Positions 19,941 to 25,869 of a stretch of 64,000 nucleotides of DNA are shown here, one piece after another. The stretch is from positions 33,604,001-33,668,000 of the forward strand of contig OZ260667.1 in the NCBI GenBank assembly GCA_965285935.1, in the 5' to 3' direction. The notes under the pieces were generated by a model. It saw only the letters and a list, made by a program, of their open reading frames with translations. It had not been told where the DNA came from and did no database searches. Every line of letters starts with the position of its first letter. Position 1 is the stretch's first letter. Origin of the DNA: Ophelia neglecta (lineage: Eukaryota). The translations under genes were made by a program, and so were the position numbers.

Positions 19941-20451
19941 ACTTGTACTAAATGGGTGTTTCTAGTTCATTATTTCTCCGGGTATTTTTTCCAGACATGG
20001 GCTCGGTTTCATGCAGTCTGTCACCTCCTAAGTCTCTTTGCCTTGAGTGGACAGCTAGCGGGCAGGAAATTACTCGTCTCTGTTCGCTGGGTGTCTGACG
20101 AAGTCATCTCTGAATTTATAATCGAGCTATATTGGCGGAGAATAATGTAATTCACCCCTTATCTGGCAGTGACAGCAGATAAACCGACTTTGTCCAACGC
20201 TTTCGATGCCGTTTTCAATATGTTGTCTCCCAGACATGTCCCAAAGACGGACCTCAAAGACAAGCCACAAAAAACAAGTCTCAAAGTAAGAAGTTAGTGA
20301 TTCACCAGCGGGTCTCCAACAAAGGTCTATGGTATTAAAGACTAGGAGGCGTGTCCTCAAACAGCTAGGTAACTGCCGGGATCATCTTAAGACGGGTCTT
20401 TATGCCGAGGAAACTGGTCCCAAAGACATGTCCAAAGCAGGTCTCCTTCAC

Positions 20452-20729
20452 TCAGAGACTGGCATAAACGACTCACAGAATGGTATAAACGACTCACAGA
20501 CTGGTATAAAAGACTCAAAGACTGGTAAAAAAGAATCAGAGCTTGTTATGAAATACTCCGAGAATGGTATGAAATATTTAGAGGATGGTATAAAAGACTC
20601 CGAGACTGGTATAAAAGACTCAGAGACTGGTATGAAATACTCCGAGATTGCTATAAAAGACTCCGAGACTGGTATAAAAGACTCAGAGACTGGTATGAAA
20701 TACTCAGAGGATGGTATGACAAACTCAGC
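20452..20729 (+). repeat. 21-bp tandem repeat (~13 copies) open as the heptapeptide SETGIKD/SETGMKY within ORF 20329-20772
   Basis: Unit tcagagactggtataaaagac. No indels or stops across the 13 units in this frame. Confidence 0.9.
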
Positions 20730-21294
20730 GAAGAATCGTAGACGGCTTGAACGGCTGGTTGCAGATTCTTAGAGCCGGGCTTCAAAGACTCAGGGACAGC
20801 ACTGGTATCGAAGATACTAAGCCGTCAACATGATAAAAAACAGTATTAAATATTCAAAGCACTTAATGTTCAGTTATAACATGTGACTATTTTTGTAGTA
20901 GCTCTTCACATGGTAGGCGTAGTGGCATGATAGTTTTTCTGGGGCGAGTTTAACATGAGGATTTGTGTAGATTTACGTCAGTAGTGATTAAATGTTGAAG
21001 ACTTAGGCAAGTTGGAAATCAGTCGTTATATCAAGGTCCGTAAATGAATTGACCGCTTGAGAAGACTTGAGTTCTGCCAACATATTGATCCAATAACTGC
21101 AGTTGAACAAGGCATAAGTCTCACGAGAAACTGCGTTCTATTGCCATGAAGTAAAATTTGTCCATAGGCTTCAGAAATACAATTACAACCATGTGATCGA
21201 TCAGAATCATAAGGGATTAGCCCTCATGCTTGTAAATGAGGGTTGAAGAAATCACCGGGCGCAGATATTAGATATAAGCATATTGTAATATCTG

Positions 21295-21340
21295 CATTTT
21301 CGGCAGATTTGTATGCATGCATACAAATCTGCCGAAAATG
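21295..21340. repeat. Perfect 46-bp palindrome with no spacer, abutting the truncated left TIR
   Basis: cattttcggcagatttgtatgca|tgcatacaaatctgccgaaaatg, axis between 21317 and 21318. Confidence 0.95.
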
Positions 21341-21643
21341 TAAAAAATGCAGAACACCCAAGAACGGCCGATAACACATTTTTAAACACCTTTTATGAAA
21401 CACTTTTAGAACGCATAAAATGCGTTATACGTGTTCATTTTGCATAGGGTTCTTGTTTAGAATGTTTGATGTGCTATTTTAGAACACATAATTGAATTTG
21501 AATTTAAAGCGTGTACATGCCGATACGGTCAGGTGTTGTTCACCCTGCATGCTGGAGGGGGTGGTAAATTGATTGAAGTGGACCGACATTTGGACGCTAT
21601 ACCACATTTACCTCATAATAATTGTTCCTTATAATGATTGTAA

Positions 21644-21997
21644 CTAGTCCTCTGTGACATCTTCCTGGATTTTAAACGCCCGAGTGCCAGTTTTGACAAA
21701 AAATTTATATTTGGCTGACGTATCGGCCTGATACGTTTGATTCATAATAAATGTCTGCAGCACAGCCAAAAACATGCTGTATTTCTTGGGGTACGCAATG
21801 TCAAACAAATAATAAATGGCCAAAAGTGTCAAAATAGCGGCTAGGCTGTCTTTATGTTTGTCCCCGGCATCCACAACGCACTGGTCGCTAACCACATAAG
21901 CTCCTGCACATTTTCCTTCGTCTAAAAAGAAAACAATTCTTGGGGCCTCCCCTTCCTTGGTCACGAGACGATCGCCCCACTCATTTTGTTCCATGTC
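21644..21997 (-). pseudogene. Last exon of the EnSpm-associated accessory ORF (SAMD3-like C-terminal domain)
   Basis: Acceptor attactttcag|GAC, open to TAG at 21644. The motif AILTLLAIYYLFDIAYPKKYSMFLAVLQ matches the YYxFxxxYP signature of animal CACTA second-ORF/SAMD3-like proteins. Confidence 0.75.
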
Positions 21998-22489
21998 CTG
22001 AAAGTAATATGGAAACATCCGTTGAGAGCGCAGTAGAAATTTTTTCCCTATAATAATATATATGGCATTTTAAATATAACACGCATCATCTGCTTATATA
22101 GGGGGGAGTCATTAATTATCAATGGGGGTGGTATGGGCTGGTGGGGGTCACAGCACCCCCCCCCCCTCTGACAGGGGCTTCATGAAAGCCCTGTGATGGG
22201 AGTGGTCATAAAATCCATGGAATGAGGGGGAAAACCACAAAATAGTGCTTAAAATGCACAGAGCATATATAGATTTTTAAAATTATCCCGGGTGGCTCCC
22301 GGACCCCTTAGCATGCAGGCTCACCCTTTAAAGTTGACTTTCAGAAAATTGAACCCTTGCTAACAAAAACCGGCTATGTGCCTGTAGCACATATGCCTAT
22401 ACATATAAATAAATTTTGGTATAGGAAAGTTGGGGATCATTCATGCTTCCTACTTCACGCAGATAGATAATTAATTATCAGTTTCTCAC

Positions 22490-22550
22490 TTCAAACACTG
22501 TCATGATTGGCTCTTTACTGCCTTATTCGCCATCCATACTACCTTTAGGC
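22490..22550 (-). pseudogene. Penultimate exon of the same accessory ORF, with an in-frame stop
   Basis: atttgtatag|g CCT AAA...TTT GAA|gtgaga translates as PKGSMDGE*GSKEPIMTVFE. The phase-0 donor matches the phase-0 acceptor at 21997. TAA at 22523-22525. Confidence 0.5.
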
Positions 22551-22981
22551 CTATACAAATAAACGGCCGGTTAATTCTCCATCAAGTAGTGGCACCGTTT
22601 CTTACAAGAGCCAAAGCACTAATTACTCTAGGCCTATAGTGTAGTCAAAAACACCTGGGCCTACTTAATAAAATTTCATTGCAGGGCCTGCTGCCTCGTG
22701 AATGTTTGACGCGAGTTGCTATTATGTCTAGGCCTATGGTAATGCCGGGGACATTATCAATTAATTCGCACTTAAGAAGATGCCTCGTCATATGCTCGAT
22801 GTTTAAAATGGATATAATGCAAATGATGATTTTGTATTGATGTGATTGAAGTCGATTTGGACCCTACCTTACACTGATTCCCGGCGTCCTCCAAAATGAT
22901 CTTCCCGGAAAGGAATCTATAGAACTTCCGGTGCACGTGCAATTCTGAAACAGTCTCGCGTGCTTTTTAACGCAGAGTGTT

Positions 22982-23012
22982 CAGATTCAGAACACAATGT
23001 GTTCTGAATCTG
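22982..23012. repeat. 31-bp hairpin (15-bp arms, 1-nt centre) in the CACTA subterminal region
   Basis: cagattcagaacaca-a-tgtgttctgaatctg, an inverted pair of the element's AGAACAC motif. Confidence 0.9.
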
Positions 23013-25869
23013 TACGCAACATACGCGGTAGGCTACCATGTTATTTAGCGACAAATATATCAAACACATGAAGTCATATCTCATAGAACGCATCGGTTCT
23101 ACAATAGAATGTTATCTGTTCAAAAAGCATTCATGCATGGATATCAGCAATTGTTTGTGTGCAAATGTCGAGTTGTTTTTTTAGACTTTTTTAATTGTGA
23201 GCTATGATACTATCCTTAGACATTCGTCTGTGGTCAGTATTTTATTTCAAACATATTTAGACTTTAAATAGATATTAATACCATAGTTAAACCACGCACG
23301 CTTTCAAACGGAACGCCCCGTCGTCAGAAAGTTCACATTATTATAATGAACATTCAATTTCTAGCCATAAGGTAACGTATAGCGTTAGCATTCAGATCAC
23401 ATAAAACGTTGAAGAACGCACACTGATCTGATGGTGAACGCTGCGTTTTACTCGTGTTCCTCAATAGAACGCAGATTACGCGTCAGGGCGAATACACGAC
23501 GTTTTGTCCGTTCTGCATTTTTTACAGTGCAGTCAGTAGAATGTCACTACAATTATCCATAGAATCACAGCTGGTGTCAACCACATTAAATGCTCGATCA
23601 AGATTAAATGTTGTTGGTAGCCATTATTTATTTGGGGTGAAGGGCGGCTTTCTAACCCTTACAACCACTTGCTCTCAGAACCACTACAATGAGGTAGGTC
23701 CAGCTCTGCTCCTTCGGCGAGTTAATTGCCAGCTTGACCAAAGAAAAATGGAGCTAAAGTGAAGCTATTAGGGTAAATGATTTGTAGCCACACGGCCAGT
23801 CGCATTCCAATTTCTTTAAGGAGCAGACCATAGTAATTAAGTTTTCGAGCAGTTGAGGAACAACTATCAGGCATTTAGCGTCCACATTGGCCTGCAATTG
23901 GACATTTACAATACAACGACTGTATGCCACCGGCATCTCCACATCGACGGGTCATTTGCGGTCATACTGGATTTCATTCTGGCTTTGTTTACTAGTAACT
24001 TCCATGGAAATTAAAAAATAATAATCCTGACTGGAATATTACTATTAGAGAGAGAATGACCGGTAGTATACCACCTGCACCTCATACCAGACAAATCCTT
24101 CTTAAAAAACGAGAAAATGGATATTCCGAACAGCTTAACAGTTCCCACGAAGTTCAACCCTGTCTGGACTGCCAAACATGAAACAACAAAGTCGCAGCCG
24201 GGCCAGCCACAGTGGTGTGTGTTGAGAAACTATCACTCAACATGGAACCAACAAGGCATTACGTTTTATCGGGTAATGGACACAATTCATCAACTGTTTG
24301 TTGACACGTTAATCTTATCAAACAAAGGAGAAATCTTGTTTGAATTGAAACCTGCCAGACGCTGTTTGTAGACTGTTTTAGACTTGTAGGTATGTTTTGA
24401 TATGGCTGTGAGCGTGTAATTGTGTCTTGAACTATACCAAATGTCACGTGCGCCTGTTCCTGCAGTTGTTTTCATTTCGTCGTATGTTTACTTGTAAAAA
24501 AATGTCATCCGCATTGCTCATCCGCCGTGGTCTGTTCTGTCTAACAATCAAATAGGGGTGTGATGAATTTATCCAACAGCCATTTTAAGAATTCTCATGC
24601 TTCGATTTCTTGTTCGGATATGCTTTGTTCTATTTATGCCCAGAATACTTTCATAACTGAACTATCTGAAAAGTCACAAGACATGGTGGCGCTAACTTTT
24701 AAGACTTTTTAGACGGTGGTAGGCGATGGTAGAAAAATGGTAGGCGGTGCGCATGGTAAGCGATGGTGAAATGTGGTAAGCCGTGATATAAAAAAGGAGG
24801 TAGTGTTTTGCGATTGAGATACAAGGTTATAATAGGACTTATAGGCGTTGGTCCAAGTTGGCCTCTTCAACACTGCATCTGGAATTTGGAAATTTTCAGC
24901 ATGAATGAAATTCGATTGACTGACTCCATTGTGACCGCAAGATGGCACTTTTTTGATGTTGTCTGCTGTTAGAATGTTCTGATAGCATTTCATACGGTAT
25001 TCTTCATATGAAGAACGACCAATCAATTGTTACATCGTATTCCGTGAGTATTGCCAAAAACTGCTGCAGCTATTTACTAGAACAATCGCAATTACTTTAT
25101 GTTTGTCACATTTTATCTGATAATTTCGGGGTGTTTTTTTTTAAATACGGTGTGATAGATGGCACGAAAATTGGTACCTGGCTCGCTGATAATACTAGTA
25201 ACTGACTAAGTGCGTCTCTTTCCTGACATCAAAGATAACAGTTTGGCCTCGTTGAAAAGTTCTTTCATATACTAAATCGCTTTTCCCTTTTGTTCGCCAG
25301 ACTTGAAATCGACACTATTAAAGGATGTCTGGTACTTCCTAGCCTCAGTCGATTCAGATTCCTCCATTATCTAAGCTATTGACTTTATTAGATTGGAAAG
25401 CTTCGTGCCATATAGCCAATATATCTAGTTGAGTTTTCACATCTCCCACTCGCCGGCCTCTATTTGTTATCAGTCAGAAGTTCACTGAAGCTGTTCGTTT
25501 AACATTTATTTTATTCTCCCCATTATCTGTTGCTGACTACAATACAAACATATATGAGTATTGGTGTCAACTGTTCACGTAAACTATGACGTTCTTTAGA
25601 TCGCTTGACACCCAAACTATGGCTAATTGCGAGGCTTCATGTTTTGTGTATATGGCTATTGGCCGATACCTCGTGTTTGTCTTCGCAAACAAGGCTAATG
25701 TTCGTCTGAGTAGGAGCCACCGCCCATAAAAACATATTACCCGACCGCGTCTGACATTTAATAGTGTTTAGTGAATTGAATCCAATGTTTGCTGAATTGT
25801 TTCTTGTTAGCGACATGTACAGGAAACGATTAGGGCTAACAGCAACTCGTATAGAATGAATTGTTTGTG

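Follow-up and report, generated by a model that had tools for sequence, protein, structure and literature searches.

Flank hairpins and their repair in described systems

RAG1-type enzymes nick DNA exactly at the CAC border, and the 3'-OH of the flank then attacks the other strand. Elements of the hAT type leave palindromic footprints, whose centre is taken to mean that the nick falls 1 nt inside the flank, and inverted duplications adjacent to Tam3 are known with the element still in place. Hairpins on the flanking DNA have been demonstrated for hAT elements, Transib, MULEs and V(D)J recombination (PMC5499845), and the last of these also yields open-and-shut joints, where the signal end is reattached to the very coding end from which it was cut (PMC2118463). 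P nucleotides usually number 1-4, and hairpin opening by Artemis takes place 1-4 nt from the tip (PMC2175297). At blocked ends, MRX-Sae2 cuts the 5'-terminated strand at a distance of 15-20 nt; it also processes hairpin-capped ends (PMC6315862; PMC5795779). For the EnSpm/CACTA-CMC branch, we found no published account of the cleavage chemistry, and no literature report of flank-hairpin cleavage was found for the EnSpm/Mirage/Chapaev branch.

Here we describe a locus of Ophelia neglecta at which the left border of an EnSpm-like element is occupied by a long perfect palindrome. In our preferred reading, which we hold with a probability of roughly 0.6, this palindrome is what repair left behind, as a scar of the "open-and-shut" type, after a transposase had cut the left end of the already inserted element. 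As in the open-and-shut and hybrid joints of V(D)J recombination, the events would comprise a RAG1-type cut at CAC, a flank hairpin, an off-centre opening and rejoining to the own end (PMC2118463; PMC2175297). Unlike in those joints, the setting here would be the germline and a mobile element, the insertion would measure 21-23 nt instead of 1-4 nt, the element end would have lost 3-5 nt, and the enzyme would be EnSpm-like. The locus also resembles the footprints of Ac/Ds and Tam3 (hAT), which contain palindromic flank-derived insertions and joint microhomology, and for which flank hairpins have been invoked (PMC4561436; PMC5873905). However, hAT footprints are found where the element has left an empty donor site, and their centre is the complement of the base adjoining the element (PMC5873905), whereas here the element is retained and the axis lies at its border.

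A perfect palindrome at the left border of the element

The window, i.e., the whole 64-kb stretch of DNA that was analyzed, contains the following features at this locus (all coordinates without a chromosome label refer to the window).

21295..21317, plus strand: left palindrome arm; the flank originally to the left of the insertion, single copy in the genome, with the final CA (21316-21317) as left copy of the 2-bp target-site duplication
21318..21340, plus strand: right arm of the palindrome; exact inverted copy of 21295-21317, with no other family copy adjoined by the same arm
21339..21355, plus strand: remainder of the left TIR, without the initial 3 nt, CAC, of the family terminus CACTGTAAAAAATGCAGAAC
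21341..23509, plus strand: element body; 2.19-kb non-autonomous copy, 96-100% identical to other copies
23510..23529, minus strand: right TIR; intact, ending in ...ACAGTG (TTTTACAGTG to 23529)
23530..23531, plus strand: right copy of the target-site duplication (TSD), CA; the length of 2 bp is taken from two fully intact copies on C9

Together, the arms form a perfect palindrome of 46 bp (21295-21340), with 23 nt in each arm and a spacer of 0. The left arm has the 3' end ...GTATGCA, with CA at 21316-21317, and the axis (between 21317 and 21318) follows immediately after this CA, which matches the right-flank CA at 23530-23531. At the centre, the sequence reads TGCA/TGCA (TGCATGCA), i.e., TGCA is doubled and no microhomology was used at the axis. 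The right arm terminates in TG (21339-21340), which is also found at positions 4-5 of the family terminus CACTG. Judging from the letters, this TG could come from the arm or from element positions 4-5, which would amount to a microhomology of 2 nt. The left end of the element begins TGTAAAAAATGCAGAAC, with two mismatches to the terminus at the first three positions, and 21339-21355 form a 17-nt perfect inverted repeat with 23510-23526. A sequence-only reading of the locus had described an intact right end followed by CA, a left end without CAC and an axis at the flank CA. All of this was confirmed, and its coordinates for palindrome and element were correct when the sequence was rechecked.

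An axis scan of the 64-kb window found no second perfect zero-spacer palindrome with arms of at least 9 nt. A further ~124 kb of unique sequence from the same genome contained no perfect palindrome with arms of at least 9 nt except (TA)n, so that ~190 kb of the O. neglecta genome (window and extra sequence) were scanned in total. As nothing comparable was present in the window or in the ~124 kb of extra sequence, we regard the 46-bp palindrome as a mutational product and not as the result of chance. Folded as single-stranded DNA, it reaches -23.5 kcal/mol (z = -9.6 versus shuffles). In a genome search, the full arm sequence was present at the window locus only, and it is not a member of a repeat family.

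Part of the arm (21299-21316) is an 18-nt exact match (TTCGGCAGATTTGTATGC) to a multi-copy repeat, which is present in more than 20 copies at C5:111.3-115.9 Mb and also at C1:136.25-136.36 Mb. Chance alone would give about 0.02 such matches across the genome; the similarity stops there, and the palindrome is absent from those copies. Approximately 550 nt to the left of the palindrome, a tandem array (20450-20728; 13.3 copies of a 21-nt unit, with 81% matches) is contained in an ORF of 147 aa (20329-20772), for the product of which no record was found. No Rfam match (structured RNA) was obtained in 20500-24500.

Three other identities of the palindrome or its flank were ruled out. Neither the element nor a longer TIR includes the palindrome, given that at seven other left ends the terminus is immediately preceded by an unrelated flank. 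A 10-nt match to the TIR (TCTGCATTTT) and a 16-nt match at 21128-21143 prompted us to consider the left flank as the degenerate end of a second family copy, but local alignments of flank and element scored within the range of shuffles. Finally, a small palindromic MITE flanked by a TG TSD does not account for the palindrome, because the genome is without such a family and the implied flank does not match the right-hand CA.

Both flanks of the window copy are single copy in the genome. A paralogous empty site was ruled out, since neither flank has a second copy. The empty-site joint (...GTATGCA followed by GTCAGTAG, with 21317 joined to 23530) was present in no contig of the one sample described below, and the unrearranged allele (...GTATGCA followed by CACTGTAAAA) was not seen in this sample either. 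A protein look-up with one neighbouring ORF returned no record of other assemblies of the locus. As no palindrome-free allele, empty or unrearranged, was seen, we infer the order of events.

The element family and its target-site duplication

The window copy is a deletion derivative of a 9.4-kb copy on C1, and lacks the 6.7-kb coding interior as well as a segment of ~480 bp. When both ends were searched against the 762-Mb genome, the family, which is young, was found to comprise ~9 loci with 12 exact termini. Matches to the family terminus with one mismatch were no commoner than in the control. The TIR is ~20 nt in length. Among left ends, six other copies have CACTG and one has CATTG; right ends read CAGTG in four copies.

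Two copies on C9 (~1.57 kb each) are intact at both ends (CACTGTAAAAAATGCAGAAC...GTTCTGCATTTTTTACAGTG) and have TA/TA flanks, which gives a TSD of 2 bp and excludes 3 bp. Other copies are flanked by CA (C8:34.66M, left), by AT (four C8 copies, left) and by AT (C1, right), and the 2-bp TSD is therefore not confined to TA. For the window copy, the TSD is CA/CA if the axis is the element border. The sequence-only reading had anticipated CACTG ends with 2-bp TSDs, and the ends (CACTG...CAGTG) and the duplications (TA/TA in both fully intact copies) bear this out. Likewise, the palindrome is absent from all other family copies, the arm sequence is unique to the locus, and the window flanks resemble the element no more than expected by chance.

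Tc1/mariner was considered on account of the TA TSDs, and was rejected because other copies are flanked by CA or AT and because the transposase is RAG1-like (Z 5.0 for Mos1, see below). The TSD of Transib and ProtoRAG is 5 bp; the family TSD is 2 bp and does not have this Transib/RAG-like length.

A RAG1-like transposase core

Only one copy has coding capacity (C1:140827778-140837135). Its left end is truncated and starts at family position 69. The transposase frame of this copy is split, by frameshifts or introns, into three overlapping ORF pieces (L036 7764-9762, L040 752-1177), which lie on the strand opposite to the left-to-right orientation of the element. By inspection, the pieces contain in order NTDD, LADT...CRIC, DPMH, HFMVH and RFEAK, corresponding to D, D, C(2)C, H(3)H and E. 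Residues H380, H384 and E404 are nearly invariant in alignment A1 of the homologues.

Pfam searches with the C1 ORF pieces gave no match even at E 10. A database search with the 374-aa piece identified 46 homologues, including proteins from limpet, acorn worm and fishes. A few of the homologues have Pfam matches below threshold, to Plavaka (PF18759; 24.7 bits, cut-off 26.3) and to DUF4218 (PF13960; 16-20 bits, cut-off 27). A language-model atlas feature search listed Plavaka, Transposase_21 (PF02992) and RAG1 clusters.

For structure prediction, we used a natural full-length homologue (P0004 of alignment A1) and left the C1 pieces unjoined. P0004 is collinear with two of the C1 pieces (38-49% identity), and its model has a pLDDT of 89.1 and a pTM of 0.91. 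In a Foldseek search against the PDB, the top 45 matches of the model were all RAG1, BbRAGL (amphioxus) or HzTransib (Helicoverpa), with a best E-value of 3.8e-10 over ~440 columns. An independent alignment of the P0004 model against representative structures (VIA-align) gave the following scores.

RAG1: Z 16.0 (387 residues, rmsd 4.8)
BbRAGL: Z 14.6
P element transposase: Z 9.9 (next fold)
HzTransib: Z 7.8
Hermes: Z 6.2
Mos1: Z 5.0

The family transposase, as predicted from its modelled homologue, has a RAG1/Transib-like core, which together with the order of the motifs places the family in the EnSpm/Mirage/Chapaev/Transib/RAG1 clade. The members of this clade with known biochemistry, RAG1 and Transib, cut at the CAC border and leave the flank as a hairpin. 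Residues ~452-580 of P0004 form a C-terminal beta-barrel in the model, which matches the BAH domains of DNMT1, ORC1, TNRC18 and MET1 (Z 8-10, ~100 residues). The C1 counterpart of this C-terminal region is located at L036:7764-8888 on the minus strand. The modelled barrel suggests a chromatin-reader-like module fused to the RAG1-like core.

Like Transib and ProtoRAG, the family has CAC termini and a RAG1-like catalytic core as judged from the model, and a flank hairpin has been shown for Transib (PMC5499845). Unlike these elements, it has a 2-bp TSD, and the C1 pieces have no match to a RAG1 Pfam domain. Members of the CMCT clade have C(2)C and H(3-4)H motifs, CA..TG termini and 2-5-bp TSDs in common (PMC12730594), and 2-bp duplications together with CAC...GTG ends have been recorded for animal CACTA elements (PMC6004678). 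The elements used for comparison were the animal EnSpm/CACTA (CMC) elements ENS1_Cis and CMC-NA MITEs and, within the CMCT clade, Plavaka and ESTA; the weak Plavaka and DUF4218 matches occur in homologues of the family. The family is a CMC/CMCT-clade (EnSpm-like) member of the RAG1/Transib clade. For what the sequence-only reading had labelled a "CACTA family", CMC/CMCT-clade, EnSpm-like, is the better name, as the Pfam matches are below threshold.

Origin of the palindrome

According to the preferred reading, that of an open-and-shut cut, the transposase would have nicked the top strand exactly 5' of CAC, and the 3'-OH of the flank would have attacked the opposite strand. The flank, with a complete CA/TG duplex, would thereby have been sealed into a hairpin, and the element end left blunt. 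A nick in the 5'-terminated strand, at a distance of 21-23 nt from the tip and not at the tip itself, would then have opened the hairpin, which would have unfolded into a 3' overhang with the flank sequence in reverse complement. The terminal TG of this overhang may have paired with the element end after the latter had lost 3-5 nt, with fill-in and ligation closing the joint. The right end would never have been cut, or would have been resealed exactly. Having lost the terminal CAC, the element can probably no longer serve as a substrate at the left end. The sequence-only reading had already proposed a flank hairpin opened ~21-23 nt from its tip and rejoined by microhomology to an element end trimmed by 3 nt; this interpretation is partly supported, and we regard it as the best one at hand. 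That the cut was "one-ended" and its effect "immobilising", as had been proposed from the sequence, are points that we infer. The right arm is read as a P-type (palindromic) insertion of 21-23 nt.

Several features of the locus argue for this course of events. With a RAG1-type nick at CAC and attack by the 3'-OH, the flank should be reflected about its very last base pair, and the locus fits this expectation to the base. Where the arm meets the element, CAC has been lost and the TG belongs to both sides, which amounts to trimming by 3-5 nt together with a 2-nt microhomology, similar to Ac/Ds footprints (PMC5873905). The full CA and TG are present on both arms, which indicates cleavage after a completed insertion, since in a one-ended insertion the top strand ends before CA. 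The flank end TGCA is self-complementary, yet it is doubled, and for this reason a covalent link from strand to strand is expected, and not a primed switch or annealing. Flank-hairpin chemistry of the family gains indirect support from the RAG1/RAGL/Transib-like fold predicted for the homologue. The more specific view that an animal EnSpm-like (CMC-branch) transposase left a germline fossil of its open-and-shut cleavage at this locus, with a CAC-border nick, a flank hairpin and clipping ~21-23 nt from the tip, has in our estimate an even chance of being correct.

Given the usual P length of 1-4 nt, an insertion of 21-23 nt is unusual. From this length, an opening 21-23 nt from the tip would seem to resemble clipping by MRN-CtIP/MRX-Sae2 more than an opening of the Artemis type, and a nick ~15-20 nt along the folded-back strand would leave such a 3' extension. 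A parallel is offered by the work on hairpin-capped breaks and inverted duplications in mre11/sae2 yeast, in that a hairpin-capped end undergoes clipping of the MRX-Sae2 type ~15-20 nt in, which matches the insertion length (PMC6315862). However, the yeast hairpins form by fold-back at short inverted repeats, with a spacer left and with large duplications or dicentrics, whereas the reflection in the window is without a spacer, measures 23 nt and lies at a transposon border.

A template switch, or fold-back synthesis without a covalent hairpin, would require that replication or break repair came to a halt where flank and element meet, perhaps because of a transposase nick or of bound transposase. 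Approximately 21 nt of flank would have been copied from the wrong strand, and the return at the TG microhomology would have replaced CAC. New inverted repeats are known to arise by short template switches, and the return junction does have a microhomology of 2 nt. Moreover, hairpin-mediated inverted duplications in yeast arise from breaks via pairing of short inverted repeats (PMC6315862). The switch point, in contrast, is without microhomology, and primed switching would give a single TGCA at the centre. An intrastrand fold-back also needs a loop, but the spacer is 0, and an axis located exactly at the TSD/element border is unexplained unless the transposase made the lesion. We therefore consider a template switch unlikely.

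Still less probable, in our view, is an origin of the palindrome before the element. In this case a palindrome of 42-46 bp would have existed at the target, the element would have inserted at CA on its right edge, and a later deletion of 5-7 nt (CA+CAC, in a CACAC context) would have taken the left TSD and the tip of the element. A small deletion within the CACAC run is a plausible slip, and some transposases of the clade favour distorted or hairpin-forming targets, as has been reported for RAG transposition (PMC1618415). On the other hand, long perfect palindromes are very rare (no other was found in the ~190 kb scanned), the palindrome is not a repeat family member, and three coincidences would be needed: a position 0-2 nt from the element, an exact deletion, and identity of the arm dinucleotide with the TSD (1/16).

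An aberrant insertion is very improbable. In this case normal integration would have been confined to the right end, a hairpin would have formed from the nicked target, and end joining would have attached the left end. Target hairpins are known from RAG transposition intermediates, and the events would resemble a RAG-type resolution of a single-end strand transfer. However, the top strand of the target would end before CA, so that the hairpin could not carry CA and TG on both arms, and the centre ...GCA/TGC... needs a completed, filled-in TSD.

The palindrome in read-derived contigs

We compared Logan contigs of three public runs (X1, X2 and X3) with the window over 20700-24100. The runs come from one sample, and the sampled animal may be the assembled individual. 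The X1 contig (693 nt) spans 20700-21368 and thus both arms and 28 nt of the element, with two mismatches to the window, 21264 G>T and 21332 C>T. The X2 and X3 contigs both end at 21332, 15 nt beyond the axis. As the k-mers starting at 21302 and 21303 are mutual reverse complements, a k=31 graph must break at 21332. By this reasoning, the X2 and X3 contigs stop because of the perfect palindrome, and the stop is itself a signature of the palindrome. A T at 21332 breaks the symmetry of the arms, and X1 alone therefore crosses the palindrome. The C>T change at 21332 in the second arm, found in the X1 contig only, may be genuine and interrupt the palindrome on one haplotype; otherwise it is an error path by which the contig came through.

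The palindrome was accordingly carried by independent read-derived contigs of the one sample, with X1 running through it and X2 and X3 breaking as expected. Chimeric long reads can generate palindromes, but a fold-back chimera of sequencing or assembly is highly improbable here, as contigs of three other runs include the axis and at least 15 nt of the second arm, and one of them enters the element.

Other damaged family copies

Four copies of 4.4 kb are located on C8 (C8:33057500-33064500, L037, and C8:30.27M, 36.72M and 50.97M). Their flanks are identical, which means that they sit in a segmental duplication. The right end was found without the terminal GTG in three of the four (none was found for C8:36.72M), and reads ...TTTTTTTACA, TATAT, ACACAGGG. 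This junction (...ACA/TATAT/ACACAGGG) could represent a 3-nt loss with a short palindromic addition, and is ambiguous in the TA-rich flank. An empty site for these copies was sought in the recurrence of the right flank at C8:33.15M and on C7, and was ruled out because the homology begins at ACACAGGG, the edge of another repeat.

Another copy (C8:34663500-34668700, L038, referred to above as C8:34.66M) has the left end CATTG, with one substitution in CACTG, and has lost the entire right TIR. Its right joint reads ...GTCCG followed by an 8-nt palindrome, TGCATGCA. By their sequences, the joints of the C8 copies and of C8:34.66M are compatible with P-type additions but ambiguous, and no clear second example emerged among the other damaged ends of the family.

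Implications for the transposase clade and for hairpin repair

The pattern is known from a single locus, and we take it as a single-locus clue to cleavage by this transposase group, which has received little study. With its axis placed to the base on the TSD/CAC border, the scar, together with the RAG1-like core predicted for the transposase, points to hairpin chemistry in the EnSpm/Mirage/Chapaev group. If the preferred reading of an open-and-shut cut is true, the locus would be in vivo sequence evidence that the CMC branch, like RAG1 and Transib, places its nick exactly at the CAC border and hairpins the flank. This fits the view that hairpin cleavage at the CAC border is ancestral to the clade that yielded RAG1.

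The length of the palindromic addition, in turn, hints at how the germline cells of this animal open hairpin-capped breaks. If the same reading holds, then without tip opening of the lymphoid type a hairpin would be clipped ~21-23 nt from its tip, and the resulting P insertion would be at least 5 times the usual length.
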